Position numbers and translations under genes: made by a program
Shown: positions 20,426-50,415 of the stretch, piece after piece
Numbering within the stretch: position 1 is the first letter of the stretch
Layout: every line of letters begins with the position of its first letter
The notes under the pieces: generated by a model
The model's input: the letters and a program-made list of their open reading frames with translations, nothing else
The model's database searches: none
Told to the model about the DNA's origin: nothing
NCBI GenBank assembly: GCA_965202585.1
Contig: OZ241831.1
Span: forward strand, 5,332,001-5,396,000
Direction of reading: 5' to 3'
From: Thalia democratica
Lineage: Eukaryota
DNA: 64,000 bases

Positions 20426-21601
20426 CTAAAAATGAAACATCAGCAAATTATGAGGTACTTTCAACTGCCTGGGATTTGAAGTTTCTTCTCTTCCAAAATC
20501 AAGGATGCTCCTCACTATTTGGTCCAAACTCTGGATGTACGGTGTGAACTTCAGCACACCTTTCTTGAAGCACAAAACCTTCAATTGACCCGAGTACCGG
20601 TACTCCAGCGGGAACTCAACAACGTTTGTGACAGTCTTCTCAAGGAGCAGCACTGTGATGTGAAGGTAGTAGAAAGAAAAATCGTGGACCATATTGAAAA
20701 ATACATTTTCGGAATAAATATTTTTCTCATCATCCTTGTCATAAACAAACGCCATGACTGCGGGCTTCTCTTTAATCAGACGCAACGCCTCTTTGGCGCA
20801 AGAGGCAAAAACGAAATTGCAACTGTCAAATACACCAGAATGTTCGTATTTCAACAAACTGGCTATTCCGTGTAAGCTTTGAAAATATTCTTGATGCACC
20901 ATTTGACGGTTTTCGAAGGCAGAAATATGCAACCTATTTTTGCTTTCAACGTTTTTGAATTTGTTCTCGTTATCAGTCGAAACGAACACGCATTCGGGGT
21001 ATGCCTTGGCCAAGTTTCTCACCACTTTTGGGTAGCTGCTGAACAGAAAACTCGAGTCGTATGTGAAAGTTATGAAAGGGTCGTCAGGACCTATTTCTTC
21101 GCTGTTTTCAAATTCTTCGCCGGTGTAAAAGTTTTTAATTTTCTCTTTCTTTTCTCTTTCTTCTTCTTCCTTGTCAGCAGCGTAATTGGTCACTTTGATA
21201 TCGCCTATATTATACTGAAAAGGTTCCTTTTTGAACCTGCCACTTTCAAGACTTATAACCATACAGAGAATATCTAAAAAATCCTGCAGTTTTCTATCAG
21301 ATGGCTTGTTAACAGTTCTTATGCACTGGTGCTGAAAAAAAAGCTCAAACTGTGGGTTTTTGTAATCGTCATGCTGGACTGAGAACCCCGAAAATTTCAT
21401 CCCTGGGCTGTTGGCGTCCGCGAGGCAAAACGAAACTTCCGGAAAGTGCCGCGCCAACAACAAAATGGCGGGAAAGAAGGAGCCGAAGTTGCTGTTGTAT
21501 TTGTGCAAAACGAGCAAGTTGTATTCGTCTTCATACACCGCTTTCATGTACTGTTCGAAATTACCGACTTTGTTGACGACTCTACGGGGTTTGTTTTCCA
21601 T
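20426..21601 (-). CDS. Intronless triple thioredoxin-fold-like protein, paralog 1 (391 aa, no CxxC)
   Basis: Uninterrupted ORF clearly paralogous to 37742-38926 and 49237-50415; conserved AG acceptor 18 nt before the ATG and AATAAA in the 3' flank. The ORF is well supported; the fold assignment is by manual pattern match. Confidence 0.85.
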   Translation of the reverse strand: MENKPRRVVNKVGNFEQYMKAVYEDEYNLLVLHKYNSNFGSFFPAILLLARHFPEVSFCLADANSPGMKFSGFSVQHDDYKNPQFELFFQHQCIRTVNKPSDRKLQDFLDILCMVISLESGRFKKEPFQYNIGDIKVTNYAADKEEEEREKKEKIKNFYTGEEFENSEEIGPDDPFITFTYDSSFLFSSYPKVVRNLAKAYPECVFVSTDNENKFKNVESKNRLHISAFENRQMVHQEYFQSLHGIASLLKYEHSGVFDSCNFVFASCAKEALRLIKEKPAVMAFVYDKDDEKNIYSENVFFNMVHDFSFYYLHITVLLLEKTVTNVVEFPLEYRYSGQLKVLCFKKGVLKFTPYIQSLDQIVRSILDFGREETSNPRQLKVPHNLLMFHF

Positions 21602-24600
21602 TGCAAAACTAATTTAACGCTGAATAGAAACAAATAGTGTTTGTTCACATGCATTTGAAGTTTTTTGACAAATAACTTATGGTTTACTAAGACATAACTA
21701 AAATTTTAATTTCATGGTAGTTGAGATACTATATTAACTTGATTATTGAGTAAATGGAATCTTATTAGGTAAGAAAAACTAAGTGACTTCTTATGGAAGC
21801 TAAAAATAAAACACTTAAAATTTAATTAATTACAAAACAATAACTTTTTTAATGAAATTTTCAACTAGATAACATTGTTTTCTTTGTATCTAATACAAAA
21901 GATAGTCATGTTTTTTGATACCGTAATGAAAAAATAAAACCAAAAGAACTTTAAATTTTTTTTGAAAACTAATCATTGTTGTTTGAAATAGTTTATAAGT
22001 ATAACATCAATTCTATAATCCTGGTTGTATATTAATTAACTCTATTGTAGCTTTCAATAATCTAGTTGCTTTGAATACATGAGAAATAATAAATTTTCTT
22101 CATCGTTTACTAACAACAACTGTTTTATTAAATTTTTCATCAACAAAATATGCAAGTTAAGGAAGAATCATGATCAAAAACGTTTATAAGACCTATTTGA
22201 AATTTTAGATACTTTTAGACAAAAATTTTGTTCAATCTAAAGTTGTTACGTTTAAGATTTCATTGCTTTAATTATACATATTACCAATACGTTTACCTAA
22301 AAGTTTACACTGAAAAAAAACTTGTTACTATTCGATTCTGGACTAGTTACAAAATTTTAAACAATAGTTAAAGTAATTTAATTATAAGCAATACTTGCTA
22401 TTTTAATCTACCAAGCAAAAGTGTTAATTATTTATAAGCAAACTTTAATTTAAATATTCACACAGCAAAGAAAAGTTGAATTAACTGAGGTAAAACAATT
22501 CGATTAAAAACTCATAACGTTTTTTAAATCCTTTAAAGTATGTTTAAAAATGTTAACAAACATTAATAGCTCTGAACAATTTCTTTATATTAGATATTAA
22601 TATTCATTTATTAATTTTTTTAGTTCATTTACTTTACTAAAGAAATCTTATATTTCAAAGTATAAATTTAAAAAAATGTTAAAAATTAAAGTTAATTTTA
22701 CTTATTAGTTTAACAGCAAAACAGCTTTTGATTTGTAAAGGATTGTGAAACAAAATGAAACTTTGATTTTTCTAACAGCTTTACATTTGTCTAAATTATA
22801 TTCGAAAATTGCAAATATTTAATTACCTCAACCTAATTTCGTACTTTTTGCAAAAGCTGTTTACAAAAAAATGTTTTATTTTTTTTTACTAAACATATTA
22901 GCTATACAATTGGAGTTATATTTATTATTTACAACTTGAAATATGTATTTTTACAATGCTCTGTTTAGTTTAAGTCTTTACTTATCGAAGTATAGTTAAT
23001 AAAAAAACTGAACAATTGCATCGTAAAAACTATCAACTCTTATTACTAGCGACCTATACTACAAAACAAATGTTAAAAATAACTGAGAGTGTTGTAGCTT
23101 TAATTAAAAATGGCACAAGAATTATAATAAAACAAATAATTAAAATCGATTTTTTAAATGCTTTAGTTAGTAATTTTAAACATAAAAGTCTACATATCTT
23201 TTATTGTTCTTTTTAATTACTGTTAATAAGCAAATTTAAAGCAATTATTTCAATGTCAAACTGTTTTTTGTGTTTCAAATAGTATTAACTTTAATTTTGA
23301 GATGTAGCTCTTATATGAATTCATTTTAAAATTTTATAAAAGCGTAAGCAGATATGTTACTAATCGTGACTATAAGCTTTATGTGAATATCATAAATTAG
23401 TTATAGTTTTAAAAAAGTGGAAATCATACGACCAGTTGGTAATTTCTAACGTTTCAGCAGAAAATTTTAGTTCGCAACTTATTTTTTGCTTGAAAAAATT
23501 TTGTTTAAATAAATTAAAGTTGTTCATTTTAAGAACAAATGTTTTAAAATGCGTTCATTACCTTTATTTATGCACTTTAGTGCTCTTTAGTTGCTAAATG
23601 ACTATTTATTGCAGTTTTGCTTTTGAATTATTTTGTTTACAGATTATAAAACAATTATTTAAAAATACTCTGTCCATAAAGATTTTTTTGACAAGTCCAG
23701 GTCGAAAATAATTTTCCTGGTAAATATAGGCCGCCAAATAAAAAATTATCTTTCTATAGATTTAAGAAAATATTAATAAGGTTGTTGTAATAAAAAAACA
23801 GTTAACTGTTTTTTAATAATAAGTCGATTTAAACTATATTTATATTTGAGTTAAAGAAATAATCTAGTGCTTAATTTTTGTTTCCTTTTTATTTAACGTG
23901 TTTTAAAATAAGTACGATTTTACTAAGGAACACAAACATTATAAAGAACTAAATATCTTTATATTTCAAAGTTATTTCTTTAAAAATAAAAAACTAGAAC
24001 GTTTTTTGGTATAACAATTTTTCTAATTACTAAATTTAAGATAAATAGAACACTTGAATTTCACAACTTCTACAAAACACGACTAAAGATCATCAAAAAA
24101 GATTATATTTTATTTTTTTAAAGTTATATACCAGGATTGTAATTTTCTTGTAACTTTAAATTTAAAAATTTTGAATGCCTAAATAGTACTATTACAGTTT
24201 GTACAAATTATTAAAAAGCGTATAAAAAGTAAATCGTTACTTTTGCACTCCATATATCATGTTTTAAACAAATTCAGTCATTTTTTTTTAATGCTGTAAA
24301 TTTGCTAGTTATTTGCTAATCAATATTACTAAAACATCGAAAACAAACTTTAAACGTAACACATTGAAAAAATATTTTTAAATAAAGGTACAAACAATAC
24401 ATAAACCTAGGAACATGGTCAGTATTTCTAAAAGGTTATAAATAATTTCAATACATCAGCATTACCCAAGCAAAGAAGTTAAATTTAAATTCAAACTTTA
24501 TAAACGAATCTTTAAAGCAGATAGTTAGAACTAGACGTTTGTAAAAGTATTTATTTACAGTGCATTTAACAATTTGGGCAACAAATATTTAAAATTCAAA

Positions 24601-24879
24601 ATAATTTAATATAAATATGATATAGACATTTAAAACTTATCTTTTAGTTATTTTATCTATGTGTACCGTATAAAATTATTCTTTTAGAATTAAAGCAATC
24701 TTTCAACATATTTCACTTTGAGCAAAATAGCTATTTGTTTATATTAAAATGTTTTTAGTTAACTTCATAATTAAAACAGTTTATTGCATCATGACTTCTA
24801 AAGCCATTTTATTTATAAAACTAGAATTTACAAAAAAAAAATTAGACCATTTTACTTCAGTAATACGGGCTAATTTGTT

Positions 24880-25412
24880 TTATGACATCACACTGAAAGG
24901 TTCTTCTTCGTTCCGCTCCATCAGCTTCCCTGCCTCCTCTGCTCGACCGTACGAGGCAGCAGTTTCTCCTGTTGCTCGTACCGGACGCGTTCGAAGCAAT
25001 CATGGGGCCCATGCTGGTCGTAGTCATCCTTCGCATCCGCCTCGACCTGCGGAAGACGACGACTGAAACGAGCACCACGAAGATCAAAACCGCGAATACG
25101 ACGATCAGCGACGACTTTCCCTGCTTCCTATTGGCTGGCGTCGACACCGGTTGTGACGTCACAGTTCAATTGAGAAACGACGTCCACGACCGAGTTGGTG
25201 AAGTTGACGGGCGGGCCCTGGCACACGTAGTAGCGCCACCCCACCACGTTTATGACGTCACTGTCGAGTATCCAATCAACGAAGGGTAAAAGTTGGCAGT
25301 CGCAATCGAACTCGTTGCCTTTCAGGTCGATTGATTTCAGCGTGGGGGGAAGACGGGTGAGGAATTGTTGGGGAATCACCGAAATGTTGTTGTAGGCCAG
25401 GTTCAGTATTAA
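24880..25412 (-). pseudogene. Inverted copy of LRR receptor exon 10 (LRRCT, TM, tail), frameshifted
   Basis: Near-identical to 45671-46306, but 5'-truncated, with an 8-nt deletion after CDVTT (stop at ...VDASQ*) and deletions in the tail. Confidence 0.85.
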
Positions 25413-25491
25413 CTTATTTGTGAAAAAAGAGTAACTTCAAAACTACTTTTTTAGGTTTTTTTTAACTTACTAAGAACAGGCTAAGAAACTT

Positions 25492-31426: not shown

Positions 31427-34308
31427 GTAAATACGTAATAAAAAATTACTTTATTTTAACGGTTTCAAAATGGTTTCTTTCTTTTAAACTAATTAGAATT
31501 TTTTTTTTTTTTGAAGATTTTTTATAAATTTTAATAAGCTTATGTGATTTTACCTTAAAGTAATTTTACGTTTTTTTCTTAATTTCAGTTATACTATGAT
31601 AGATACACTATTTAGGGTGAATGAGAATTAAGATTTTGATTTTATTTTTTTATGGCTATCGTTTAAGTGAATGCTTAATGTTTAAAACAATTTTTTGGAA
31701 GATCTAAGCTAGGTACTCAAAAAAAAATTATGTTGATCACTTTTCATATTTATATATATGAATATAACTTTTTCTTTTCTAATTTTACTCTAGCTTCCAG
31801 CTTATATTTATTAAACATTTTCGTTTAAACTATACTCATTTTTTCAGTTGTTGGTGTTTTCAGTGAGTGCTGTTGCAGCTGGTTTCGACTGCCTACCCGG
31901 ATGCATTTGCGACATAAATGAGGACCATTTGCTGGCAAACTGCACGGATACGTCAGTTAGCCAGGTTCCCACGACAGACAATCAGTTCATTTACCAGGTA
32001 AAATGTTCAAAGTTTGTAAAAATGTACTGTTTGTATAAATTAGATATATAAAACTTCATGCTTATTACAGTATTATTGACAGATATAGATTAAACAAAAG
32101 CTTGTGCTTTATAATGCACATTGGTGAACTGCGCGGTATTTGACCTGCCAAACATAAATACTTTGTTTATTTTATAAAAGCGAGTTAAAATTAACTACTT
32201 TATGAATTGTTTTTAATTAAAACTTAGAAGTAAAATGATAATTTAATTGTGGGTAGGCAATGGTAATACTTTATATATTATTAAATTTAAAAACGAATTC
32301 TTTTTTAGCGTAAATTAATCAAAATAAGATGCAAAACATTTGTTGTTTAATCCTAAACGTTACTTATAAAAAGCTGTTGTACGGCACAAGTACTCATAAA
32401 ATGTTGTTCAAATGTTACTTCTAGCAAACAAAATGTTTAACACGTACCAAGTTTGTTACTTTTTTAATTTATTAGTTTTGGAAGCTACAATATTTTAATC
32501 ATAAGCATCTGACTACACTAATGGCCGAACATAAATTTATCAGTACCGATTACGGAAAGTGACTTAACTAACAAATTGAAAGCGTAAAAGGTATTATTAC
32601 CATTTAAAGTCCAAAACTATATTCTAAAAAAAATTTCTAGGTTAACGAACTTATACTGAGTTACAATGGTATAATAAGGATTCGATCAGACAATTTCAAA
32701 AACTACAACAGTTTAGAAAAATTAGTATTGAACGGTAACAAGTTGCAATTTTTCGAAAAAGACTCATTTCTTCCATTTAAAAAAAGGTAAATTATATTAA
32801 AAAGTTGTACACAATTTATTAATAAAAATAAAAAAATCAATACTCTAAGCTAATGAATTTTAATATCCTCTGTTTTAAAACTTTTATTTGGTTATGTTTG
32901 AAAATAAGATTCTTTATTTAAAAATCTAACTTTACATTTACCTCATCTTTTTTATAACTTTTTAGTGTAAAAGCTTTTGAAACCAAGTTTTTTTTTTAAT
33001 TTGCATGGTTATTTTGTATTTATAATTTTATTTTATTTTGGTTGTTTATATTCTTAAAGCTTAGCACCTTTTTTACTTAAAAACCTGTAAAAACTAACTT
33101 CTGTTCCAAGTTTATAAAAAACAATATATCAACTAAACATTTGCTATTTAAGATGATATATTTTCTAAAAATCTACATAAAGTTTGAAAATAGCTTTTTA
33201 ACTAGTGTGTCTAATAATAGCTTTATTTTAATTTTTGATATCAATTTATGAAAAAAAAAGAATTTAAAAATTAATTATTACTTCTATTTTTGTATTTAGT
33301 TTATTTTTTTAAAAATAGGTAAACCTATGATAACTTTAAAATGTATAAATGTTTTACTTAATTTTTACACTTTATAAAAAGTTATTCATCCTACTTTTAA
33401 ATCATGTCAAAAGTTTGAAAATATTTTTTGTCTGTTATTTATTTAGTTAAGTGCAAAATTCCAATTAAAAAACAAAATATTTAAATATCAGTGCAGGTTT
33501 AATATTAGAGTAATTAATTGATAAAGAAACTATAGAAAGACAAGCTGTAAAAAGTGAAAAAAATTATAAAACAAAACAAACAAAGCTTTTTTATTAAGAT
33601 TTTTCTTACCTTAAACTTAAAACTTAAGCATAGCTTTTTAGTTTAAGCGTTTAAATACATTAAACATTTTCCCATTTATAACTATTATTTTAGAAAGTTT
33701 TTACAAGTTTTTTTATGAAAATTGAAATATATTTCTGTTATGTTCAAAACAGATGAATAAAACGTAAACACACAAAGATTAATGTTTGTTATTTCAACGC
33801 CAATTCAAAGCGAGCCTAATCTTACAAAGTTAATGAAGTAAAACAAAACATTTTCGTTCAAAACCAGCTCGTTAACAAAAACGCTTCACCGTGGTAACAA
33901 AAAGGTTTTTTAACTAAAACATTCTAAACACTCACGCTCAAACAATTTTCCACCCGAACAAGTTTAATACCGAAACTTAACAATCCGCAATAAATTACCG
34001 CCGAAACCGAGCGAATAATTGTAATAAATGTTTTTTTTTAATTTCAGCGGCAAACTGACGTATTTAGACGCATCGAGCAATTTTCTGACGAACACCAGGG
34101 GATTGAACGAGTTGGCTGACGTTTGCGGTTCGATCACCCACCTACTGCTGGCCTACAACCGGGTCAACCTGATACCTGATTTTTTCAGGAGGATGGCCAG
34201 GTTGCGGGTTTTGGACCTGAGCCACAACGATGTTGTGACGCTGCCACCAAGTACCTGTTTGTTTGATAAGTAATTTAAATATTTTAAATTAACTTTCATA
34301 TTATTTGT

Positions 34309-34339
<31 letters not shown>

Positions 34340-37300
34340 TTATTTATACATTTATTATATTTTAAAGTTTTCTATGTTGTAGGAAACAAAGACTTTTAAT
34401 AAGCAACCGAATGCCATTTATAAATCCAAATAGTTATTATAGTTGTTTTTAGCTATCCTTTTAAATGTAAACTAACAACGGATGGCTGTAAGTCTTATAT
34501 TTTCAGCAGTCTGTTTCTTTCTTGTTTAATTAAACTGTTTTGAAGGTCGTTTGACTAATTTGTTTTGGACAAAATAAATTGTGGGCGTTAATCATAATTA
34601 CGAGTTATTTTAGGTGCAATCAAAAAATATTATTGAAGTTCTTAATAAAAATTAGCTATTTTTTGTTAAATAAATCTTCAAACTGTATGCCTTACTTCAA
34701 GTAACACTAAAGCTATAAGTTACTTTAACAAAGATTTAAAGAAATCTACCATTAAACAGCTTGTTGATTTTCAACTATTAAAGTTTAAGTTTTTTCTGTA
34801 CTAAGTAATTTAGTATAAAGTTAAGCAGTTTAATCAAAACACTTAACTTTTGTTTTTTCAAAACAAATAAAAGAAACAATGGTGAAAGTTATAATGTTAA
34901 TTAGCTTTCCACTACAATTTGTTGTATAAAACACTTTTCAATAACTTCGTACTTACTTTTAAGTATATTAAATGAAAAATAAACACAAATAAGTAATATT
35001 TACTAGTTATTGTTTTTGATAAGAATAAAATGTACTTGAAATGGAGATATATTCAAAAACTCTTAACTATATATTTTTTGATTTCAACCAATTTAAATTT
35101 TCTCTACTCTACGGGTGGGCAACTTTTTAGTCGGTCGGGCTATATTTAAAAAAAAAGTTTCTTTGTGGTTTGAACCTGTAAAAATAATTTATAGGCTGCG
35201 TATGTTTAAAAAATTTTCTATAAAACGCAAATTTTTTTTTTCTTAAATTGGAATAAGTTAATTATGTAACAACTAAAAAACACTCTAAAATACAAAAAAA
35301 AAGCTAAACGCATATTCTATAACATTTTTTTATTCAAAACACCAACACTAACTTGTTTCAACACGACCTTTTCAAGCTAGAAGTATGCTAGGGCAACTAT
35401 AACAAATTTCAACATTTTAAGTTTTTAGTCACGATATGTAACATATCTGTTATTTTCTTTTAGTATGCTTTTATAAAACTTTTACATTAGTTATGTCATA
35501 GCTAGATTTAAAGATCAAAGTTTGTATTGTGTAAAACATGAAACTTAGTTCGAAAAATAAGCATAAAAGGTTTGAAATCTGTAATTAAATTATAAAATTT
35601 GCTTCTCTTTAACGCATTACTTAAAACAACTAAAAAACATAAAATAAACGACATGTAAATTTTTCCGTTCAAAACTACTAATTGAATCAAATGTTAAAAC
35701 CGATTTTAAGGTTTTTTTTATTACTTTTATACCACTTTTAGTTGCCTACTTAAGCATCCTAAATTTAAATTGAAGAGATTTTGTTTATGTACGTAGAGAG
35801 GTAATAATCATAATCTTAATTGTATAGCTAAACTGTAAACAACTTTTGCTAGGAGTACGAAATTAGATTTTTAAATATGACGTACTTAATTTTTTGCAAC
35901 TTTCATTAACAACTTAGACAAATACGTATACAAACTTAACTATTTAAAAAATAAAAGGTTTATACGATCGTATTTTATATATATAAATTAAATAAATATT
36001 TAGCTCCAAATCAAGTTCTCGAGCGCTATCGACCAAAACTTTAAAAAAGCTATAAATATGTATGGGGTCTAAAAGACGCAAATAAAGACTATAATTTAAA
36101 GTGTGAAAAACTCTGCAGAACTAAAAGAAAACAAAAAAACATGCCATTTATGTTGCTTAGAAAAGTACGAAATCAAAAAATCGAAAAATATTTATCATTA
36201 AATAAAAGAAAAGAAAGGCAGCAACCCTGTCTCCACAATCAAAACATGTATTTTAAAAGAATAAAAACCACTAATCAATAAAAACAAATAGCAATAAAAT
36301 AAAACTAAAAACAAGAAAAAACAACGCAAAAAATAAGTTAACTTGTACATAAGTTATTTTCAAAATAAGATAATTAAAATTATTAAATTAATTTGAAACG
36401 TCATAATGTGTTTTTTGGGTCATTTTAAAAAATTTTGCTGTGTACTTTATTTTGTTCTGAAGATACGGTGTTTAAACGTTGAAACTAAAGAAACGATACG
36501 AAAATTAGTTGTTTATTTGTATTATAAAAATATATATATATATCTAAATAGAGCTTATAAAAAGAATTAAAGTTTAAGTTCGTGATACAACCCTTTTGAA
36601 TCCATTATCGTTTTACTTTTACACTGATAAGTAAATAAACTGTGCACTTTCAACAATTTTTTATTTAAATCCATACTTAAAAGTTTACAAGATACGATTT
36701 CTTTATCAAAATAATTTTATTAGTATTCAAATCTCCAAATTTCTTATTGAAAATCAAAGTTCTAAATGTTCCTAAAAGTATTTAAAATAGATTGAGATGT
36801 TTTTAATCAAGTTGCTTTATGTCATTAACTAAGAATCTTTTATTATTTACGGATCTGAATGCTGAAGTTACTTTGTTGTGTTTCATCATTAAGCTTTTTT
36901 TTATCACGATTAACATATTTGCTTGGTAGCATAAAAGAATAAATACTGCTCAATAATTAAGTAAGAAATATATATTTTTAATTCTAATTTTTATAGTTAG
37001 TTTAGATTCAAAAAATTAAAAGTATTTTTTAGTGTAAATATTAAAAAAAAGGTTTCGGAAACATATCTATTAAAAGCAATGAAAAATAAACCATAATTCC
37101 ATAAGATTGTACTATAGATATGTTTTATACTTACTTTCTGTTAAAAGATATTTGTATATTTTTGCTGTTAAATCTTATTAACGTTTTCGATTATGATTCT
37201 TTCTTAACTGAAAAAAAACTTTTAACCAAAGAAGTTAATAGTACAAGGTTGTTGATAAACTGTAAAAAAAAAATTCTGTTGTATTCAAAACCACTGGATT

Positions 37301-40300
37301 ATTAATAGCTTCAATAAAATTAGTTTTATACAAATAATGTTATATTCAGAATTTTACTTATAAGCTATTTCCAGCAACAAAAACACTTTTCACAGTTTTT
37401 CTTATTACAATTTCTTACTAGGTTATAAAAAACTTGACTATTTTTTATAAAAAACACATAGAAAACAGTGTTATTGGTATAATATTTCATAAAAGTTAAA
37501 GTTTTATAAAAAGAGTTATTTTTAAATGTTTTATTTTTAGCTCCAATAAATAAAGAGTCACATTTAACTCTTTATACCTACTTAGATTACATTTAAAAAA
37601 TTAGAAAGTTAAAATAATATCTAAGTACCAAGAAACAAAAATTTCAATTATGTCTTAGTAAAGCAAAAGTTATTTATAAAAAGTCAAAATGCGTGTGAAC
37701 ATATACTTTTTGTTTCTATTCAGCCATAATTTAGTTCTGTAATGGATAACAAAACCCGCAGAGTCGTCAACAAAGTCGGTAATTTCGACCAGTACATGAA
37801 AGCGGTATATGAAGACGAATACAACTTGCTCGTTTTGCACAAATACAACAGCAACTTTGGCTCCTCCTTTCCCGCCATTTTGTTGTTGGCGCGGCACTTT
37901 CCAGAAGTTTCGTTTTGCCTCGCGGACGCCAACAGCCCAGGGATGAAATTTTCGGGGTTCTCAGTCCAGCATGACGATTACAAAAAGCCACAGTTTGAGC
38001 TTTTTTTTCAGCACCAGTGCATAAGAACTGTTAACAAACCATCTGATAGAAAACTGCAGGACTTTGTAGATCTTCTCTCTACTGTTATAAGTCATGAAAG
38101 TCTCAGGTTCAAAAAGGAACCTTTGCATTATGTTCTAGGTGCAATAGACGTGAGCAATTACGCTGCTGACAAGAAAGAAGAAGAAAGAGAAAAGAAAGAG
38201 AAAGTTAAAAACTTTTATACTGGCGATGAATTTGAATTCGTAAAAAGCGACGAATTTCAAACTGACCAAGCCTTCATGATTTTCACATACGACTCGAGTT
38301 TTCTGCTCGACAGCAGCTACCCCAAAGTGGTGAGAAACTTAGCTAAGGCATACCCCGAATGTGTGTTCGTTTCCAATGATAAAGAAGATTATTTCAAAGA
38401 CAAGGCAAACCACAACAGGCTTCATATTAGAGTTATCGAAAAACATCAAGAATTGCATCATGAAAATTTTGTGAGCTTACACGGAATAGCCAGTTTGTTA
38501 AAATACGAACATTCTGGTATATTTGACAGTTGCAATTTCGTTTTTGCCTCTTGCGCCAAAGAGGCATTGCATCTGATTAAAGAGAAGCCCGCAGTCATGG
38601 CGTTTGTTTATGACAAGGATGATGAAAAAAGTATTTATTCCGAAAACGCATTTTTCAACATTGTCCACGACTTTTCCTTCTACTACCTTCACATCACAGT
38701 GCTGCTCCTTGAGAAGGCTGTTACAGACGTTGTTGAGTTTCCACTAAAATATCAGTACGCAGGTCGCTTGAAGGTGTTAGGCTTTCAGCAAGGCCAGCTT
38801 CGGCACACTTCGTACATCAAAAGTTTGGACCAAATAGTGAGGAGCATCTTTGATTTTGGAAGAGAAGGAATTTCAAATCCAAGGCAGCTGAAAACACCTT
38901 CTAATTTGCTGATGTTTCATTTTTAGGGATGCTTTAGGTAGCTCTATGCGATTAAGTTTATTCAATTTGTTATGAATACCATATGTTTTTGTGAAGTTTT
39001 ATATTTTTGTTCGTTCGTGTATGAAATAAATTTTCGTTGAATAAAAGATCATTTTTGTCAAATATTTAGTGCTTCCTTTAGTTATCTGATCAGTGTTGGT
39101 AGTTTAAAAAAGTAATATTTAGGAGAAGTAGTTCAATTAATACCTATTGTATTTCATGAAAAACGGTTATAATAGTTAAGATAAGTTAAAAGGTATAAGA
39201 AATATGGTATACTTTAACACATCTTTAACTTTGATTTTTTTCGGTTTATTGTCTTTATTTATTTTGAATGTTACTAAATTTATACAACAACTATTTTGCA
39301 TACCCCTATTAACGTTCTTAGTACAATAAAAAACATTTTATGTAGCAGTTTTTTATCGATTAGTTAATTCTTAATTATTTTATACTTATAGTCTTTAGTT
39401 TAACTGTTTATGGAAGAAGGTTATGATATCTAGTTTAAAATTATGCAATGTTCATTGACTTAGCTAGTGCGTGCTACATACTTTTTAAAAGTTTTTGTCA
39501 TAGCTATGCGATTAAGTTTATTTAGTTTGTTAAAAATACCATATGTTTTTGTGAAGTTTTATATTTTTGTTCGTTCGTGTATGGAATAAATTTTCGTTGA
39601 ATAAAAGATTATTTATTTCAAACACATTGTCAGTTATCAGATCAGTTTTGGTAGTCTTTAAAGTATTATTTAGGAGAAGTAGTACTATTAATGCCTATTG
39701 TATACCATGAAAGAATGTTAAAACAGCTGAGAAAAAGCTAAAAAGATATAAGAAATACGATATACTTCTACACATCTTTAACTTATATTTGTTTCGGTTT
39801 ATGGTCTATTTATTTTGAATGTTACTCGATTTTTGCAATAAAAAACAATTTATTTTTCAGTTTTTATCCATTAGTTAATTCTTAGATATTTTATACATAT
39901 GTTTATACTGATAGACTTTAGTTAAACTGTTTATGGAAGAAGCAATGGTTATGATATCTAGTTAAAATTGTGCAATGCTAATACGTGCTACATACTACTT
40001 AAAAGCTTTTGTCATAAATTTAACATAATTCAGGATCACTACCACCATCCTTACTGTTGGCAAATTTTTCATTCAACTCGATCAAATATTTTGAAAATTC
40101 AACATTTTCCAACAACTCGAACCTGCAACACCTCATACTCAGCGACAATCAAGCTTCCAGTGACGTCATATTCCACGTCTCGTCGTTTCTTCCGTTGAAA
40201 AATCTCGTTACGCTTGACTTGTCGAGGTAGTTTACTCAAAATTTAACAGGTTAAAATTAAGTTATAATAATAAGATTACAATCGACATGACATATGCCTA

Positions 40301-43300
40301 GAACGTTTAAAAAATCCTTCATGTCTAAAAAGGCTTAAGGTATCAAGTCTATTTTGTGAAATTAACATTTTTAAAAACACTTATAGCTCTTTATAAATTG
40401 ATATCGAACTAAATAACTGTGTATATCTTTTTGATGAGTATTTAACAAAAAAGCATGCTTTATTTTTTAATAAGTGAATAAAATACTAATAATTCTCTTC
40501 TGTGCTACTAATCGCATGAACTTACTCAGACTGTTACTAAGTAAAATTACTAATTTTGCTAAGTTTAAAATTGTTTTTAAGCATCAACACATACCTTAAA
40601 CATTTATCAAGTTTAAATTTCATGCTTGTTAAATAAGCCCTCTACTTCATACCATAGTTTAATTATCTTTATTGATCATTTTAAGAATACAAAACAACAT
40701 TTCAATGTGTCGTTGTACTTAAAACAGTTTTTGTTATGTTACAATTAATACTTTTGTTTTGAGATAATCGTCTATTTTAAGTTAAATAGTATGAATGTAT
40801 TAAAGTTTTGCGATTTTTTCGGTCGTTCTAACGTACTTATTCTTCAAAAACTATAAAAAATGAAACTTTTATTCAAGATATTTTAAAACTATGCACAAAT
40901 GTTTTAACAGTTGCAAGAATTAAAAAGGTTGAATAGATTATTGAAACATCTTCTGATTTCCTTTAATTTGTTTTTATCGTCAATGTTTTTTTGAGCTACC
41001 GTTCGTTTTTCTCAATTATAACATAAAAGATCAAAATACTGCTCTAAGGCTATGTTGTAGTTTTATAGGGCTAAATATTTTTATAGTTATGTTAAACACA
41101 TTGTATTTAGTAACTTAAGGTTATTAACAAACATATGAGAATAAAACAAATCTCGAGTTTAAAGTATTTCAAAAAACAAAAAAATATTATTCAAATTCTT
41201 GTTTTCGTTTATCACAAATATGTAACTTCAACAAATTATTATTTTTCAGATGCTTTTGTCGTAGAATATCAACAAGCAGCTTTCATACGATGTCCAAGCT
41301 GAAAACACTGAAGCTTCAAAGAAGCTACCTAAGAAAGCTACCAAACTTCAAAACCATCAACTTGACTAAAACCCCCTATACTGAAAAATCTTCTAAGTGG
41401 TTCAACCCAGAACTGGAGGTATTGGACGTTTCGCACAACCTCCACCTGGAAGTATTATCCAGCGGAGGATCGGACACTTTGTTTCCCCCTAACCTGAAAA
41501 AACTAGATTTCACCGGCGACTCAGTGCCGATGGTGAACGGGTTTATGTTTTCCAACTTGCGAAGTTTGCAGTCGCTGAAGCTGGACTTTACGAGGGTCAA
41601 CCACATCAGCAGAGATTCGTTTGCACGGAACAGTGACCTTGAAGAAGTCTCCATAACGCTGAACACTCTGAAGGAGATTCCGCAGCTACCAGCCAGTGTT
41701 AAAAGGCTCAATTTGATGGGCAACCGAATTGAAAATGTGACGAGTTTAACCGGAAACGGCTTGAAAGTTAGTTCAGAGGAAGGAAATGTTACTGTGGGTC
41801 TGAATAAAAGTATTAGAAATTTGTCGAACTTGGAAGTGATAAACTTGAGCAAAGGCAGAATATCGTTCATTGAGAGCGGAGTTTTCAAGAACATGAACAA
41901 GCTTACAAGTTTGAACATGTCAGATAACCACTTACGAGTCATTTCTGACGATGTGCTAGAAATAAGGTCAGTTGAAATACTTTTTTGGAATTAAACGTTA
42001 ATTTGTAAATCACTCTAAATGTTTGACCTTAAAATTTCAAGTTTAGTATGTTGTTTTAAATTTCTATTGGAATGATTTACTTAAATTTGAAGTGAAACAT
42101 AATTTAAAACATCACTATTTCCGACTATTTACTATGTTACATTGACGTAAGTTTGTTTAAAGTACAAGATACATCTGCTCGTATTAAAATTTTGTTTTGA
42201 TTATTTTGTTTCTATATTTTACATAAACAAAGGTTTAAATTTCTGTATTTTTATTTTGATTTAGATACTAATTTAAACTTTAAAACTTATTAAAGTTCAA
42301 TACATGTTTTAAAACCTAAATTTACAACGCAAAATTTATACAGAGTTGTTATAAAAAGTAACCTTTATTGAAGTGTTAAAGTTAAAACAATTATAACTAC
42401 TCTTTATATAGTTTGTTTAAACCTTAAAAAAACGTAAATATTAATTATCATGCTTTATAAAGGATTTCGTGGTTAATACCTGTTAAATTTATTAAATGAA
42501 ATAAAAATGTTTTCTATCATATTTCTTAAAAAAAAACAGTTCAAATTCAACACTAACAACTTTGGACTTATCATCAAATGAAATAGAAAAAGTTGGAAAC
42601 TCCCCTTTTCGTTACCACAACAACCTAGTTGAGCTCTACTTGCAAAATAACTACATTGCATCGGTGAACGAAAACATTTTCACTAATCTTCTGAATGTCG
42701 AACACGTTGACTTGTCAATGAACAACATTGTTGACATTTCTCCAGGTGCCTTACTGCCTTTGAAGAACATTAAAGTCAGTTTTAACTTCAAAATAAAATA
42801 TTTTACTTAAAAAATTACAAAATTTTTATATTACGTTCGATACTTAAACTTATTTATATTTAATTATTACAGCTGAATTTTCAAGACAAAGACAATTTTC
42901 TGGCCCGCACCGTGTTTTTTTAGTTTAAAAGCAATTTATACAAAACAAGCAAACTTAATTTTTGTTTTTTATAATGTTTACAAATATGCTCCTTACTAAA
43001 TAGGGAGTAAACGGCAGTGGTAATTTAATAATGTTTTCATCACAGTTTTGATATTAAAGATTTTACTGAGTTATGCTGCCCGCAAGAAAATTTTACTAAC
43101 AAATTAGCCAAAAACTATTTGTAATAAATACATGGTTTTCAAGGCTGCTGAGCCCGTTGAATTAGCGATACATTACTTGAATAAGCTTTTTAGAACTTCT
43201 CAAATCCAAAATCAAGTAATATTATTGCATAAAAGTAAACATAACTAAGTTGTATCATTACGTATAACATTGTTGGATTGCAATGCTGCTCATTATTTTA

Positions 43301-46300
43301 ATAACTTTTAGTTTTAAATCTGATAAAGTTTACTTACACTCGGTTTCCTTCTATGGAGCCTAATAAAAATTTAAGGTTTTGTTTTCGAACTAATTTTCTT
43401 TAATCTCAAACATTACTAAAACAAGTGTTAAAAATTTACAAGCTTTTTTTTATTGGCTTAATAAACTTTTATATGTTTGTTACTAATCGTGCAATAATTA
43501 ATTTTGAAGTTTATAAGTTCGAAACAGCTAAAATAATAAAAAATAACTTCGTTTTCAATAGATAATATCAAACATATCGTTTTATTCAGGTACTCCTGCT
43601 AAACAACAACCACCTCGAAATAATATGGAAGGATCAGTTCTCAAACCTGAAGAACCTACACACATTGACTTTGCACAACAACAGAATAATAAGAGTGGAT
43701 CACCCTCAGAGCATACCAGCACAAGTAACTCACCTGTCTTTTGAATGGAACCAGTTGAGCACATTTCCTATTTTGCAGTCTGATAGACTCGAACACCTTG
43801 TTCTGTCATACAACAACCTGACTGTTAGTTTGTTTTTAATAAACTAAGTGACGTAAAAATATTTTTATTGAACATTTAAAATTAATTACTAAAACGCAAC
43901 GTTATTAAGTTTAAATAGTTTTTAGTTTGTTAAATACTTTTATTAAGTGTGTTAGATTCCTATGTAATATTTTACTTATTTTTTAAAGTTTTTCTTTTTA
44001 TTACTTTGTCTAAAACTTAAAATATAATTGTTTTAGTTTAGTGCAAGTCTATGATGAGGTTTAAACGAAATTTAATTTATAGTTATCATTATAGGTGTTT
44101 TTATTGACCAATATGGCTGGTTATCATCATTTAGGATATAAAAGTTAACTTTATTGCTAAACTTACTTAAAAAACAACAAAAAATCTATATAAAACTTTT
44201 TGTTTTGGATAATAACTTATTTTTAGCGCAAAAAAAGCTAAAATATAATTTTAAAACTGGTTGGTTTATAAACTTTTGAGTCTTTTTGTTATTTTAAAAT
44301 GACAAGTATCAAAATTTTTAAACAAAAAGCTATTTTAAATTTAACTTTAAAATAAATTTAGAACTATCAAAACACTAAAAGATCAATTAGAAAATAGGTT
44401 TTGAAGCACTAGTTTTAAAAAAACCAATTAAAAAGGAAATATGTAAGAAACTTTGTTTGTTATACATTAAATTTAAAAATTTAACTTTTTTTATCTTGGA
44501 ACTTTGTTTTTCACATAGTGTAAATAACAATTAAAGAAAAATATAACAAAACTTCTTTGAAATTAAATTTGAAGAAAAAGTTGACAAAATCAAGAATTTC
44601 AAAATTTGTAACTGTCAAACACAAACATTCTTAAAAACCAAAACTATAAGTAGTCTTTAAAACTTGTATCCTTTTTAGTCGAATGCTAAATGTTAAACTA
44701 GAACTTTTTATAAATTTAGCCCGAAAAGTCTATAACTTTTATAAGCAACAGAAAAAGTAAAAAGTTTTTTTTTGATGTGTAACTATGTGTACAGTATTAA
44801 TACTTTACTTTGAGCAAATCTTTGTGCATAAAATTATAAGCTTGAAACACATGTAAAGTAAATTCTGTTTGACACAATGTATACAAACCAGTAATTAAAA
44901 AAAAATATTTGAAACTATCTCTATACATAATACTGTTCACAGGTATACACTTTAACAACACTGGCCTATTGACAAATTAGTTATATGTATACTGTTTAAA
45001 TATTTTGAAAAATCAATTTTTAAACTAATGACAAAATTGTTATGCTTATGTCGTCTACGCAAAATTCTAAACAAAATTACAAGTATTTTCCTAAAATAAA
45101 AAGATAATAAAAATAACTACGTTGAAGACTAAACATTATAAAATTTCAGGTGATACCGGAAACAGCTTTTAAAAAAACACAAAATTTAAAGCACATCGAC
45201 TTGTATAAAAACCCGAACCTAATAATAGACGACTACAGTCAATTCAAATATGTAAAAAATTTAGAACATTTAGACATTGCAATGAGTGGTCTAGTAACGA
45301 AGTTTATTGATGTTTCGATGCCGAAGTTGAAAGAATTAGTAATGTATGAAAGTCAAGTAAGAATTGTTTAGTCTTTTTTTGATATAAGACAACAAAAAAA
45401 AAGAATTTAAATTCAAAGTAACGTAACACTTTATCAAGATTCTAGAAAGGTTTCTTGTTTACAAAGAAATACATGATTTTTTAATAACCTTGACTTCTAA
45501 AACTTGGTTTGTTACCAAGTTTATATAAAAATAAAATAGCATTTCTACTTTTCAAACTGTTTATACTTAATAATTATACTATTAAGTGCACTAAATCATT
45601 TATTATAGCAATGTTTTAACTTAAATATTTTAACATTTACAGTTTTTAACATTTAAAGTTTTTCACACAGATCACCACTAAACTCTTATCAAACTCGGAC
45701 ATCCGACACTTCCTCCCCAACCTCCAGGACCTCAATCTGGCCTATAACAACATTTCGGTGATTCCCCAACAATTTCTCACCCGTCTTCCCCCCACGCTGA
45801 AATCAATCGACCTGAAAGGCAACGAGTTCGATTGCGACTGCCAACTTTTACCCTTCGTTGATTGGATACTCGACAGTGACGTCATAAACGTGGTGGGGTG
45901 GCGCTACTACATGTGCCAGGGGCCGCCCGTCAACTTCACCGACTCGGTCGTGGACGTCGTTTCTCAATTAAAGTGTGACGTCACAACGACGATACCGGTG
46001 TCGACGCCGGCCAATAGGAAGCAGGGAAAGTCGTCGCTGATCGTCGTATTCGCGGTTTTGATCTTCGTGGTGCTCGTTTCAGTCGTCGTCTTCCGCAGGT
46101 CGAGGCGGATGCGGAGGATGACCACGACCAGCATGGGCCCCATGATCGCTTCGAACGCGTCCGGTACGAGCAACAGGAGAAACTGCTGTTTAGCTTTCAA
46201 TTGGACGAGGACGAGAGAGGAGCAAGGGAGTTACGAGGAGGCGCAGTGCGAGGAACAGCTGATGGACCGGAACGAAGAAGAAGAACCTTCCAGTGTGATG

Positions 46301-46306
46301 TCATAA
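31379..46306 (+). CDS. Type I membrane leucine-rich-repeat protein, TLR-like ectodomain without TIR domain (about 922 aa, 10 exons)
   Basis: Exons 31379-31426, 31848-31997, 32641-32786, 34048-34250, 40034-40226, 41250-41966, 42540-42774, 43590-43823, 45150-45356 and 45671-46306 are GT/AG and phase-compatible (2769 nt including stop). Signal peptide, LRRNT (CLPGCICD...ANC), about 27-29 LRR units, LRRCT (NEFDCDCQL...CQGP), TM helix, about 70-aa tail. The exon 4 donor (GTACCT) is weak. Confidence 0.88.
31848..31997 (+). CDS. LRR receptor exon 2 (signal peptide end and LRRNT)
   Basis: LLVFSVSAVAAGFDCLPGCICDINEDHLLANCTDTSVSQVP; TTTTCAG acceptor, GTAAAA donor. Confidence 0.9.
32641..32786 (+). CDS. 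LRR receptor exon 3
   Basis: VNELILSYNGIIRIRSDNFKNYNSLEKLVLNGNKLQFFEKDSF; not in the ORF track, read directly. Confidence 0.88.
34048..34250 (+). CDS. LRR receptor exon 4
   Basis: LTYLDASSN, ITHLLLAYN and LRVLDLSHN repeats; 3' boundary inferred from phase. Confidence 0.85.
34309..34336. repeat. (TA)14 microsatellite
   Basis: Direct reading, just inside LRR intron 4. Confidence 0.95.
37742..38926 (+). CDS. Intronless triple thioredoxin-fold-like protein, paralog 2 (394 aa), nested in LRR intron 4
   Basis: Uninterrupted ORF between LRR exons 4 and 5 on the same strand; acceptor AG at 37722-37723; AATAAA at 39025 and 39040. Confidence 0.85.
   Translation: MDNKTRRVVNKVGNFDQYMKAVYEDEYNLLVLHKYNSNFGSSFPAILLLARHFPEVSFCLADANSPGMKFSGFSVQHDDYKKPQFELFFQHQCIRTVNKPSDRKLQDFVDLLSTVISHESLRFKKEPLHYVLGAIDVSNYAADKKEEEREKKEKVKNFYTGDEFEFVKSDEFQTDQAFMIFTYDSSFLLDSSYPKVVRNLAKAYPECVFVSNDKEDYFKDKANHNRLHIRVIEKHQELHHENFVSLHGIASLLKYEHSGIFDSCNFVFASCAKEALHLIKEKPAVMAFVYDKDDEKSIYSENAFFNIVHDFSFYYLHITVLLLEKAVTDVVEFPLKYQYAGRLKVLGFQQGQLRHTSYIKSLDQIVRSIFDFGREGISNPRQLKTPSNLLMFHF
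38940..40020. repeat. About 560/520-bp tandem duplication of the paralog-2 3' flank
   Basis: 38941 and 39501 both begin ..CTATGCGATTAAGTTTATT...TTCGTTCGTGTATG..AATAAATTTTCGTTGAATAAAAGAT and stay colinear; only one copy is present at 50415-51000. Confidence 0.9.
40034..40226 (+). CDS. LRR receptor exon 5
   Basis: SLPPSLLLANFSFNSIKYFENSTFSNNSNLQHLILSDN...LKNLVTLDLS; AG/GT ends; phase 1 to 2. Confidence 0.88.
41250..41966 (+). CDS. LRR receptor exon 6
   Basis: ORF 41290-41994 with about 9 LRR units; TTTTTCAG acceptor, GTCAGT donor. Confidence 0.92.
42540..42774 (+). CDS. LRR receptor exon 7
   Basis: LTTLDLSSN, LVELYLQNN, VEHVDLSMN; ACAG acceptor, GTCAGT donor. Confidence 0.92.
43590..43823 (+). 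CDS. LRR receptor exon 8
   Basis: VLLLNNN, LHTLTLHNN, VTHLSFEWN, LEHLVLSYN; TTCAG acceptor, GTTAGT donor. Confidence 0.92.
45150..45356 (+). CDS. LRR receptor exon 9
   Basis: LKHIDLYKN, LEHLDIAMS, LKELVMYES; TTTCAG acceptor, GTAAGA donor. Confidence 0.9.
45671..46306 (+). CDS. LRR receptor exon 10 (last LRRs, LRRCT, TM, cytoplasmic tail)
   Basis: LQDLNLAYN, LKSIDLKGNEFDCDCQLLPFVDW...CQGPP, TM SLIVVFAVLIFVVLVSVVVF then RRSRR, acidic tail, TAA. Confidence 0.92.
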   Translation: MTTKLLSNSDIRHFLPNLQDLNLAYNNISVIPQQFLTRLPPTLKSIDLKGNEFDCDCQLLPFVDWILDSDVINVVGWRYYMCQGPPVNFTDSVVDVVSQLKCDVTTTIPVSTPANRKQGKSSLIVVFAVLIFVVLVSVVVFRRSRRMRRMTTTSMGPMIASNASGTSNRRNCCLAFNWTRTREEQGSYEEAQCEEQLMDRNEEEEPSSVMS

Positions 46307-48165: not shown

Positions 48166-49236
48166 GTTTTGAAACGATTGCTTTACTTATATACTGACAG
48201 TAAATATACAGTTCACTTTTAACAAATTAATTATTCAAATCTACACTTTACAGTTTTCAAGATGTGAATTCTTTATCTAAAATATTTTATTAGTGTTCAA
48301 ACTTCCAAACTTTTGTGAAAAATCAAAATTATAAATGTTCTTAGAAATATTTAAAATATCTTATAAGAGTTTCAGTCTAATTCTTTTTAGTCGGACTGAA
48401 ATTCTTTTATTTGTTTACTGTTCTGAATACTGAAGTTATTTTGTTGTAAAATCATCATTTAACTTTTTTAAGAAGGATTAACATATTTCCTGGGTAATAT
48501 AAAATATTAAATACTGCTCAATAGTCAACTAAAACTTATAGATTTTTAAATTTAATTTTTATAGCTGATTTCGATTGAAAAATTAAAAGTAAGTTTTAGT
48601 TTAAACTAAGAAAAGGTTTTAGAACAATTTTTATAAAAGAAATGATAATTTAAGCATAACAACATTAGATTGTTTGAGCTTACTATCTGTAAAAAGGTTT
48701 TTTTTCAATTAAGTCTCATTAACGTTTTGATCATGTTTCTTTCTTAACTTATGAAACTTTTTACAAATATACATTTATAATACAAGTTTATTTGGATAAA
48801 CTATAGAAACAATTTCTGTTTCTGTCATACTTATAACCGCTACAACAAAGTTAGTTTTTATACAAATGAAATTTATATTTAAAGTTTTACTTATAACATA
48901 ATTCAAGCAACAAAAATATTTCAAAAGTAATTTCAAATTTTTCTTATTACAATTTATCACTATTTTATAAAATAGATAACTATTTATATATAATGTACAA
49001 AGAAAACAGTGTTATTGGTATAAAAGTTAATATTTAGCTCCCATAAATAAAAATAAGTTAATTTTTCATACCTAATACGATTGTATTTACTCAATAATCA
49101 AATAAATGTAATATCTCAGCTACCATGAAATTAAAATTTCAGTTAGGACTTAGTAAAGCAAAAGTTATTTATAAAAAGTTAAAATGCGTGTGAACATAAA
49201 CTTTTTGTTTCTATTCAGCGCTAAGTTAGTTCTGTA

Positions 49237-50415
49237 ATGGATAACAAAACCCGCAGAGTCGTCAACAAAGTCGGTAATTTCGACCAGTACATGAAAGCGG
49301 TGTATGAAGACGAATACAACTTGCTCGTTTTGCACAAATACAACAGCAACTTCGGCTCATCCTTTCCCGCCATTTTGTCGTTGGCGCGGCACTTTCCAGA
49401 AGTTTCGTTTTGCCTCGCGGACGCCAACAGCCCAGGGATGAAATTTCCGGGATTCTCAATCCAGTGTGATGACTTCAAAAAGCCACAGTTTGAGCTTTTT
49501 TTTCAGCACCAGAGCATAAGAACTGTTAACAAGCCATCTGATAGAAAACTGCAGGATTTTGTAGATCTTCTCTCTACTGTTATAAGTCATGAAAGTCGCA
49601 GATTCAAAAAGGAACCTTTGCAGTATGCTCTAGGTGCAATAGACGTGAGCAATTACGCTGCTGACAAGGAAGAAGAAGAGAGAGAAAAGAAAGAGAAAGT
49701 TAAAAACTTTTATACTTGCGAAGAATTTGAAAACAGCGAAGAAATAGGTCCTGACGACCTCTTCTTAACTTTCACATACGACTCGAGTTTTCTGCTCGAC
49801 AGCAGCTACCCCAAAGTGTTGAGAAACTTGGCCAGGGCATACCCCGGGTGCGCGTTCGTTTCCATGGATGAGGAGGATTATTTCGATGATGTTGGAAGCC
49901 GCAATAGGCTGCATATTGTTGCCATGGAAAGCGGTGAAGAATTGCATCATGAATATTATGAAAGTTTACACGGAATAGCCAGTTTCTTAAAATACGAACA
50001 TTCTGGTATATTTGACAGTTGCAATTTCGTTTTTGCCTCTTGCGCCAGAGAGGCGTTGCGTCTGATTGAAGAGAAACCCGCAGTCATGGCGTTTGTTTAT
50101 GACAAGGATGATGAGGAAAATATTTATTACGAAAACGCATTTTTCAACATTGTCCACGACTTTTCGTTCTACTACCTTCACATCACAGTTCTGCTCCTTG
50201 AGAAGGCTGTCACAAACGTTGTTGAGTTTCCACTGGAGTATCAGTACTCAGGTCGCTTGAAGGTGTTAGGCTTTCAGCAAGGCCAGCTTAAGCACACTGC
50301 GTACATCAAAAGTTTGGATCAAATAGTGAGGGGCATGCTTGATTTCGGAAGTGAAGAAATTCCGACTCCCAAGCTGCCGAAAGCACCTTCTAATTTGCTG
50401 ATGTTTCATTATTAG
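49237..50415 (+). CDS. Intronless triple thioredoxin-fold-like protein, paralog 3 (392 aa)
   Basis: Uninterrupted ORF; same upstream acceptor (49217-49218) and homologous flanks as paralog 2. Confidence 0.85.
   Translation: MDNKTRRVVNKVGNFDQYMKAVYEDEYNLLVLHKYNSNFGSSFPAILSLARHFPEVSFCLADANSPGMKFPGFSIQCDDFKKPQFELFFQHQSIRTVNKPSDRKLQDFVDLLSTVISHESRRFKKEPLQYALGAIDVSNYAADKEEEEREKKEKVKNFYTCEEFENSEEIGPDDLFLTFTYDSSFLLDSSYPKVLRNLARAYPGCAFVSMDEEDYFDDVGSRNRLHIVAMESGEELHHEYYESLHGIASFLKYEHSGIFDSCNFVFASCAREALRLIEEKPAVMAFVYDKDDEENIYYENAFFNIVHDFSFYYLHITVLLLEKAVTNVVEFPLEYQYSGRLKVLGFQQGQLKHTAYIKSLDQIVRGMLDFGSEEIPTPKLPKAPSNLLMFHY

Follow-up and report, generated by a model that had tools for sequence, protein, structure and literature searches.

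Calsequestrin, a chain of about 350-400 residues with three redox-dead thioredoxin (Trx) folds, is an extremely acidic protein of the sarcoplasmic reticulum, into which it is secreted, and has an acidic tail. Protein disulfide isomerases (PDIs) of the TXNDC5/ERp46 type, in which flexible linkers join several classical Trx-type domains, are luminal to the endoplasmic reticulum (ER), carry catalytic CGHC sites and bear KDEL. ERp44 has three Trx-like domains followed by a C-terminal tail with RDEL (PMC10170084), and plant NRX1, a nucleoredoxin with three Trx domains and WCxPC sites, is predicted to be cytosolic (PMC12688404). Here, we analysed a 64,000-nucleotide stretch of the genome of Thalia democratica (contig OZ241831.1, positions 5,332,001 to 5,396,000; hereafter the window), which holds three copies of a gene for a protein of about 390 amino acids (aa) with three Trx-like units. 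These copies are real genes under selection, each with a single coding exon. By analogy with described Trx-fold proteins, we consider it probable on balance that they encode a lineage-restricted, soluble, non-secreted and non-catalytic triple-Trx protein, for which we infer a binding function of a scaffold or chaperone-like kind.

The original prediction, made by reading the window by eye, had claimed three open reading frames (ORFs) of roughly 390 aa. All three are present, as are the peptide strings that it cited, and each runs from ATG to stop with zero internal stop codons:

20426-21601, minus strand: copy 1, triple-Trx-like gene, 391 aa, one coding exon, ATG-start ORF
37742-38926, plus strand: copy 2, triple-Trx-like gene, 394 aa, used as the reference sequence
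49237-50415, plus strand: copy 3, triple-Trx-like gene, 392 aa

Pairwise protein identity among the copies is 80-83%. Given 0.081 stops per codon in the non-coding flanks, a 392-codon frame would remain open by chance with a probability of about 4.5e-15. The GC content at third codon positions (GC3) of the three ORFs is 0.47-0.52, compared to 0.54 in the adjoining exon of a leucine-rich repeat (LRR) gene and an overall GC of 0.23-0.25 in the surrounding intron DNA. The family comprises clade A (the window copies and the P0001 cluster), clade B (L004, P0003 (91%) and the P0002 cluster (71%)) and clade C (P0005, P0011 and possibly P0008). L004 (1501-2664, 387 aa, 39% identity) is the one extra intact paralogue in the 800-Mb genome and lies on a different chromosome. 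The genome also contains a family pseudogene fragment, L005 (G000:C6:53344535-53344738), which covers residues 1-70 only, has two stop codons and is 50-58% identical to members of clades A and B. Pfam models for cellulose synthase, GH6 and GT2, applied to the genome as possible markers of a tunicate, gave no firm confirmation of one.

Selection on the copies is purifying. Ratios of nonsynonymous to synonymous substitution rates (dN/dS), estimated by the Nei-Gojobori method, are 0.42-0.49 among copies 1-3 (dS 0.18-0.26) and 0.39-0.42 between the window copies and L006, an orthologue from another species on a Tara Oceans contig. The ratio is 0.45 between two clade B orthologues and 0.19-0.36 between clades, and the full-length family members found across several species are all intact.

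Fold and active sites of the three units

Each protein would be formed by three tandem Trx-fold domains, a charged disordered linker and a conserved hydrophobic/aromatic tail, which are predicted to lie in copy 2 as follows:

about 37760-38116, plus strand: domain 1, predicted Trx-fold unit
38117-38209, plus strand: charged disordered linker between domains 1 and 2
38210-38509, plus strand: domain 2, predicted Trx-fold unit
38510-38857, plus strand: domain 3, predicted Trx-fold unit
38858-38923, plus strand: C-terminal tail, closing with the hydrophobic/aromatic motif

We modelled the full-length protein with AlphaFold2 from a six-sequence alignment (mean predicted local distance difference test score (pLDDT) 50.5) and domain 3 alone (mean pLDDT 49.4). 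In the DSSP assignment of the full model, the order strand-helix-strand-helix-strand followed by strand-strand-helix occurs three times, at residues 9-120, 158-252 and 263-371 (pLDDT about 50). Foldseek comparison of this model with the PDB, a check that the original prediction had named, matched ERdj5, PDI, ERp44, ERp72, PDILT and calsequestrin (E 4e-8 to 1e-5, probability 0.97-1.0), and the best rows among clusters of the AlphaFold database (AFDB) were mainly thioredoxin-domain or PDI entries (E 2e-9 to 1.5e-6). Protein-language-model features of two paralogues that are 39% identical both lead to Trx/PDI clusters. The charged linker expected between units 1 and 2 was recovered at residues 143-154, in a stretch with pLDDT 26-41 that separates two folded units.

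The Trx fold is shown for domain 1, on the basis of its model and of the sequence register. Among the best neighbours of this domain (residues 7-121) in VIA-align are TXNL1 (1gh2; Z 11.4, root-mean-square deviation 2.5 Å over 102 residues), 3evi (Z 11.1) and 1b9y (Z 11.0), and many further thioredoxins and phosducin-like proteins follow at Z 9-11. A family profile searched against PDB sequences gave five weak matches, three of which are thioredoxins (E 0.09-0.95). Their register places 'P-A-I-L...F-P-x-V-S-F' on helix alpha2 and strand beta3 and 'P-Q-F-E-L-F' on the cis-proline strand. Pro83 of domain 1 is invariant, and HMMER sets it on the proline of thioredoxin 'MPTF'. The alignment of unit 1 to thioredoxin that had been made by hand has the identical register to the HMMER alignment with thioredoxin 5jy5.

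Domain 2 probably has the same fold. Together, domains 1 and 2 (residues 7-252) aligned in VIA-align with the PDI-type di-domains of ERp27, PDILT and ERp57 at Z 9.1-9.6; domain 2 is without a proline at the cis-proline-equivalent position. In hhalign, domains 1 and 2 matched over 102 columns in the same register (P 0.003), with a score of 22.9 against 11.7±2.4 for column shuffles, 1 of 60 of which reached 22.9. This similarity makes internal duplication likely, and domains 1 and 2 are accordingly read as likely duplicates of a classical a-type thioredoxin domain. No similarity was detected by hhalign between domains 1 and 3 (P 0.38) or between domains 2 and 3 (P 0.1).

For domain 3, a Trx fold is likely from its model. 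Searched alone, this model returned nearly all thioredoxins among the top 50 Foldseek matches in the PDB (E 5e-3 to 6e-2, template modelling (TM) score by target at most 0.62), and thioredoxin-4 as the best match in the Swiss-Prot section of AFDB (E 1.6e-3). In the ESM Atlas (TM score 0.51-0.55), nine of ten rows were Trx-fold families and one was unnamed. Thioredoxins and PDI a-domains have a 'P-T-x-x-x-F-x-N-G' hairpin, and this is mirrored by 'T-P-T-x-x-x-Y-x-N-G' in domain 3 of clade B, as read from the alignment. The cis-proline-equivalent proline of domain 3 is present in clade B ('TPT') and clade C ('RPS') and lost in the window copies. The three Trx-like units of the original prediction are thus borne out to different degrees, strongly for unit 1, moderately for unit 2, and at the level of fold, from a low-confidence model, for unit 3.

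CxxC is absent from all 25 family sequences, as expected from the earlier claim that no unit has a redox motif. Nor does CxxC, CxxS or CxxT stand at an active-site-equivalent position in any of them, the sole CxxS/T strings being off-site; in domain 1, the position equivalent to CxxC reads Asn/Asp-Ser-x-x. With the loss of all catalytic cysteines, dithiol-disulfide chemistry is therefore excluded. Cys59, the only invariant cysteine, is located in strand beta3. Clade B has a Cys-Cys pair directly before the alpha2 proline of domain 1, where the window copies have Ser/Phe.

Targeting signals are likewise missing. The N-terminus is hydrophilic (highest 10-residue hydropathy -0.06 in the window copies), no transmembrane segment was found (19-residue Kyte-Doolittle maxima 1.2-1.4 in the window copies), and the C-termini read LLMFHF/Y, with no KDEL/RDEL-like ending. 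All three window copies have a TAA stop in frame 15 nt before the ATG (37727-37729 in copy 2), so that an upstream coding exon cannot contribute a signal peptide in this frame. These observations agree with the original prediction that signal peptide, transmembrane segment and KDEL are absent. Its description of the proteins as cytosolic stands as far as the missing signals go; the location itself, cytosolic or nuclear, is one that we reasonably infer from their absence.

Family distribution and relation to described proteins

No Pfam family matches the window proteins at E values up to 10, and a search with 14 family members returned no Trx-clan or otherwise relevant match; Thioredoxin (PF00085, at its gathering threshold), Thioredoxin_6 (PF13848), calsequestrin (PF01216) and Phosducin (PF02114) were all unmatched. 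An exhaustive profile search of 1.84 billion representative proteins yielded nine relatives, all family members or fragments, and a word-indexed search of 5.8 billion proteins yielded two. Every database relative derives from a marine metagenome assembly, of ENA or of Tara Oceans, and not one bears a protein name, in keeping with the earlier view that the architecture fits no known family. Scans of IMG/VR and of JGI metagenomes found no related sequence, and literature searches found no account of such a family. This is a new, lineage-restricted sequence family inside the Trx-fold class. A phmmer search of PDB sequences gave metallo-beta-lactamase-like matches at chance level only.

ERp44 resembles the family in its size, in its three Trx-like domains with a C-terminal tail and in its lack of CxxC, and is among the best full-length fold matches (5xwm, 5gu6; E 6e-8 to 1.7e-7). 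However, ERp44 has a signal peptide, RDEL and a reactive cysteine (CRFS) in domain a, and the family is without all three. With TXNDC5/ERp46 and other PDIs with multiple a-domains, the family shares several classical Trx-type domains and flexible linkers. The a-type motifs (the alpha2 proline and a 'P-x-F/T...N-G'-like beta4-beta5 hairpin) are kept in domains 1 and 2 and in domain 3 of clade B, yet no sequence homology with TXNDC5/ERp46 is detectable and no PDI-family Pfam model matches the family. Calsequestrin, which is similar in chain length and in its three redox-dead folds, is a recurrent fold match (1a8y, 2vaf and others; E 6e-6 to 5e-5), but the family has an isoelectric point (pI) of 5.1-6.5 and no signal peptide.

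The original prediction knew of no cytosolic triple-Trx protein and thereby overlooked plant NRX1 (PMC12688404), which is like the present family in being non-secretory and having three Trx modules. NRX1 differs in its WCxPC motifs in two modules, its C1-like Cys-rich domain and its membership of a Pfam-recognisable family, whereas the present family has neither active sites nor a Pfam match. The phosducin-like proteins, TXNDC9 and TXNL1 provide another comparison, as cytosolic Trx folds with binding or co-chaperone roles, the phosducin-like ones redox-inactive. These proteins combine a single Trx domain with accessory domains, whereas the family has three Trx units, no helical N-domain and no match to Pfam Phosducin. 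Their high rank among the neighbours of domain 1 implies no specific kinship to phosducin or TXNL1, because ordinary thioredoxins score equally well. ERp44, ERp46/TXNDC5, calsequestrin and NRX1 are each defined by sequence, targeting and active-site features that the family lacks, and it is therefore a member of none of them.

Gene structure, duplication and the LRR-receptor neighbourhood

Self-comparison of the window shows that the copies arose by segmental duplication of DNA, along with pieces of an LRR-receptor gene. The duplication units and the gene-structure features of copy 2 are:

36594-39502 versus 48167-51009, plus strand: duplication unit, copy 2 versus copy 3, 79.6% identity
36909-39122 versus 20264-22428, inverted: duplication unit, copy 2 versus copy 1, 77.9% identity
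34251-40033, plus strand: intron of the LRR-receptor gene, GT..AG, 5,783 nt, holding copy 2, from a spliced contig of run X9
37706-37723, plus strand: polypyrimidine tract and CAG, putative 3' splice acceptor of copy 2, ending 18 nt before the ATG
39025-39045, plus strand: two AATAAA poly(A) signals of copy 2, 99 and 114 nt past the stop, in a block kept in all copies and the orthologue

Including flanks, the units measure 2.2-2.9 kb, and homology between copies reaches about 1.1 kb upstream and 0.2-0.6 kb downstream, so that it takes in LRR exons and DNA that does not look transcribed. Copy 3 was co-duplicated with about 1.1 kb of upstream and about 0.6 kb of downstream sequence and with a relic of an LRR exon; the exon beside copy 2 (40024-40227) is copied alongside copy 3 (51020-51217). 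On the downstream side, copy 1 follows the last exon (24860-25436, minus strand) of an inverted copy of the LRR-receptor gene at a distance of about 3.3 kb, and copy 3 follows an LRR last exon at about 3 kb. These shared flanks and LRR exons place the duplication at the level of DNA.

A 1921-nt contig of run X9 joins 34221-34250, 40034-40226 and 41250 onward, with GT..AG at both junctions. Run X9 is therefore RNA-derived, and copy 2 is intronic to an LRR-receptor gene on the same strand. That gene, a multi-exon LRR transmembrane receptor gene, spans 34028-46303 (plus strand), with the junctions 34250/40034 and 40226/41250 verified by RNA. Its last exon (45650-46303) encodes an LRR C-terminal cap, a transmembrane segment and a short Arg-rich/acidic tail, and no Toll/interleukin-1 receptor (TIR) domain is visible. 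The relic of exon 40034-40226 at 51020-51217 (plus strand) is followed by no LRR ORFs onward to 58000 and may be stranded. The inverted duplicate of the LRR last exon (24957-25406, minus strand, versus 45731-46188, plus strand) has 95.4% identity, compared to 78-80% for the adjoining triple-Trx copies, a difference that points to recent gene conversion or to a later duplication of this exon. Within the host intron, the 3' flank of copy 2 is itself tandemly duplicated (38944-39502 versus 39504-40016, 75% identity). The roughly 20 kb to each side of the clade B paralogue L004 contain no LRR ORFs, and the LRR association is therefore local and not family-wide.

Copies 1-3 all keep the acceptor-like tract, as does the Tara Oceans orthologue; in clade B, AACAG stands about 25 nt before the ATG. 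The tract of copy 2 resembles two RNA-verified acceptors of the host LRR gene and may serve as the acceptor of an intron in the 5' untranslated region or of a spliced leader. The original prediction called the genes intronless, which holds for the coding part; in all copies, the acceptor-like CAG 18 nt before the ATG argues against extending the term to the whole transcript. Its suggestion of retroposition or transfer is not supported, given segmental duplication with flanks, native composition and the lack of viral or prokaryotic relatives. The family as a whole could conceivably have begun with a retroposition long ago.

Other features of the window include a GC-rich island at 4001-8000 (GC 0.40-0.47 versus about 0.25 around it), which contains a 315-aa, Gln/Ser-rich ORF with a signal-peptide-like start (4657-5604, minus strand). 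ORFs at 58946-63900 (minus strand) resemble, by eye, parts of a Penelope-like retroelement: one a GIY-YIG-type endonuclease (58946-59461), two others fragments of a reverse transcriptase (62770-63141 and 63256-63900). Outside the window, L013:3495-5422 (plus strand) contains consecutive ORFs that appear by eye to be a domesticated or decaying hAT/ZBED-type transposase; they precede the clade B paralogue by about 17 kb.

Proposed function and competing explanations

With catalysis lost, the Trx folds would most likely serve as partner-binding modules, by analogy with those of calsequestrin, ERp27, the b/b' domains of PDI and phosducin-like proteins. Conservation in the family is highest in 'P-A-V-x-A-F-V-Y-D-K-D-D-E', a stretch at the beta2-alpha2 junction of domain 3, in the loop equivalent to an active site, and its AFVYDKDDE part is almost invariant in all three clades; this loop is the predicted functional site. 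Compared domain by domain, constraint is also strongest in domain 3 (dN/dS 0.24-0.33). Domain 2, where paralogue differences concentrate, has the top dN (0.17-0.21) and a ratio of 0.45-0.61, with a higher dS as well, and the last 22 residues evolve near neutrality apart from the terminal hydrophobic motif. Domain 2, fast-evolving and paralogue-specific, and the tail may thus act as variable surfaces. Positive selection on domain 2 was considered and rejected, given that none of its domain-level ratios exceeds 1 and its high divergence tracks the higher dS. The dS of domain 1 is unusually low (0.10-0.13), which suggests gene conversion. Each copy is probably transcribed with its own spliced 5' leader, by way of the conserved acceptor.

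Several observations weigh against the interpretation of these genes as encoding non-catalytic triple-Trx binding proteins. Both AlphaFold models are of low confidence, because the alignments hold only 6-9 sequences. The sequence profile of domain 3 found no thioredoxin among PDB sequences, only chance matches to PurK, and its VIA-align Z scores, at most 6.2, are under the usual bar for significance. Purifying selection is rather relaxed, with dN/dS near 0.45, and the Cys-Cys pair of clade B and the invariant Cys59 may leave room for monothiol chemistry. The record of expression is sparse, since an index search of RNA runs with copy 2 returned no run holding the gene at the index threshold. 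Runs located through an actin gene were compared with copy 2. One actin gene, L009 (G000:C7:49743731-49744957), is an apparently intronless, uninterrupted match of 409 positions, with a share of 0.93 in the small RNA-like run X9. X9 gave the following feature:

38856-39006 and 39018-39166: two exact 151-nt X9 contigs over the 3' end of the coding sequence and the 3' flank of copy 2, depth about 4

There was no other X9 coverage of the intron within 36400-40033, and the gene is uncovered in metatranscriptomes X4 and X7. The two contigs could be a low-level, 3'-biased transcript of copy 2, or pre-mRNA of the host gene; the latter is compatible because the second contig passes the first poly(A) signals.

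The nesting of copy 2 in a same-strand LRR intron, the position of copies 1 and 3 some 3 kb past LRR last exons and the LRR exon copy carried with copy 3 raise the idea that the proteins are adaptors or partners of the interleaved, co-duplicated TIR-less LRR receptors, for example by binding their cytoplasmic tails. We regard this as improbable. Segmental duplication by itself would be expected to bring about both nesting and co-duplication, and the diverged paralogue L004 has no LRR ORFs in its surroundings. A more specific form, an undescribed, all-dead class of intracellular pseudo-PDI from one planktonic animal lineage that would bind these receptors through the acidic loop of domain 3, with domain 2 giving paralogue-specific recognition, is less probable still. 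The same acidic loop could instead, together with the acidic linker, bind or buffer cations in the manner of calsequestrin. Calsequestrins are among the fold matches of the full model, the motif at the active-site-equivalent loop is invariantly acidic and copy 3 is strongly negative, at a net charge near -20. Yet an acidic excess of 4-20 residues (54-62 Asp+Glu versus 42-50 Lys+Arg), at the pI range given above, falls short of calsequestrin's acidity, one clade B orthologue has a pI of 7.3, and the Pfam calsequestrin match, signal peptide and acidic C-terminal tail are all lacking, making cation binding an unlikely function.

Residual redox activity, as mixed-disulfide chemistry of a single thiol after the CRFS type of ERp44, draws on the invariance of Cys59, the Cys-Cys pair of clade B and the rank of ERp44 among the top fold matches. 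It has little probability in our estimation, given that Cys59 sits in a beta strand away from the active-site loop, that the window copies have Ser/Phe in place of the Cys-Cys pair and that no CxxC, CxxS or CxxT motif occupies the active-site-equivalent positions. Finally, the copies could be decaying retrocopies, or acquisitions from viruses or bacteria, without function in the host. The intronless coding sequence, the small and lineage-restricted family, the L005 pseudogene and the scant expression record are in line with such an origin, but it is very unlikely. Four full-length copies have stayed intact even though dS among the window copies is already 0.18-0.26 and is saturated between clades, dN/dS stays under 0.5, and orthologues from both clades are intact in other species. 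The acceptor-like tract and the poly(A) block are conserved and GC3 is host-like. No relatives turned up in IMG/VR, JGI metagenomes or prokaryotes, no intron-bearing parent gene is among the genome matches, and the aligned 3' flanks, shared as genomic DNA, show no trace of a poly(A) run (no search was aimed at target-site duplications). A non-catalytic triple-Trx binding protein is thus the reading that we favour.

Catalytically dead Trx folds are common as binding modules, and the Trx fold is among the best known. What is new here is an uncurated, unnamed sequence family that is taxonomically very restricted and whose all-inactive triple-Trx architecture apparently lies outside the secretory pathway. 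The link to LRR receptors, if true, would bear on innate immunity in invertebrate chordates; its support so far is adjacency. Altogether, the family offers a clean example of a lineage-specific family that arose from internal domain duplication and lost catalysis, and it gives a concrete annotation to several genes, of this genome and of Tara Oceans data, that would otherwise be 'hypothetical'.

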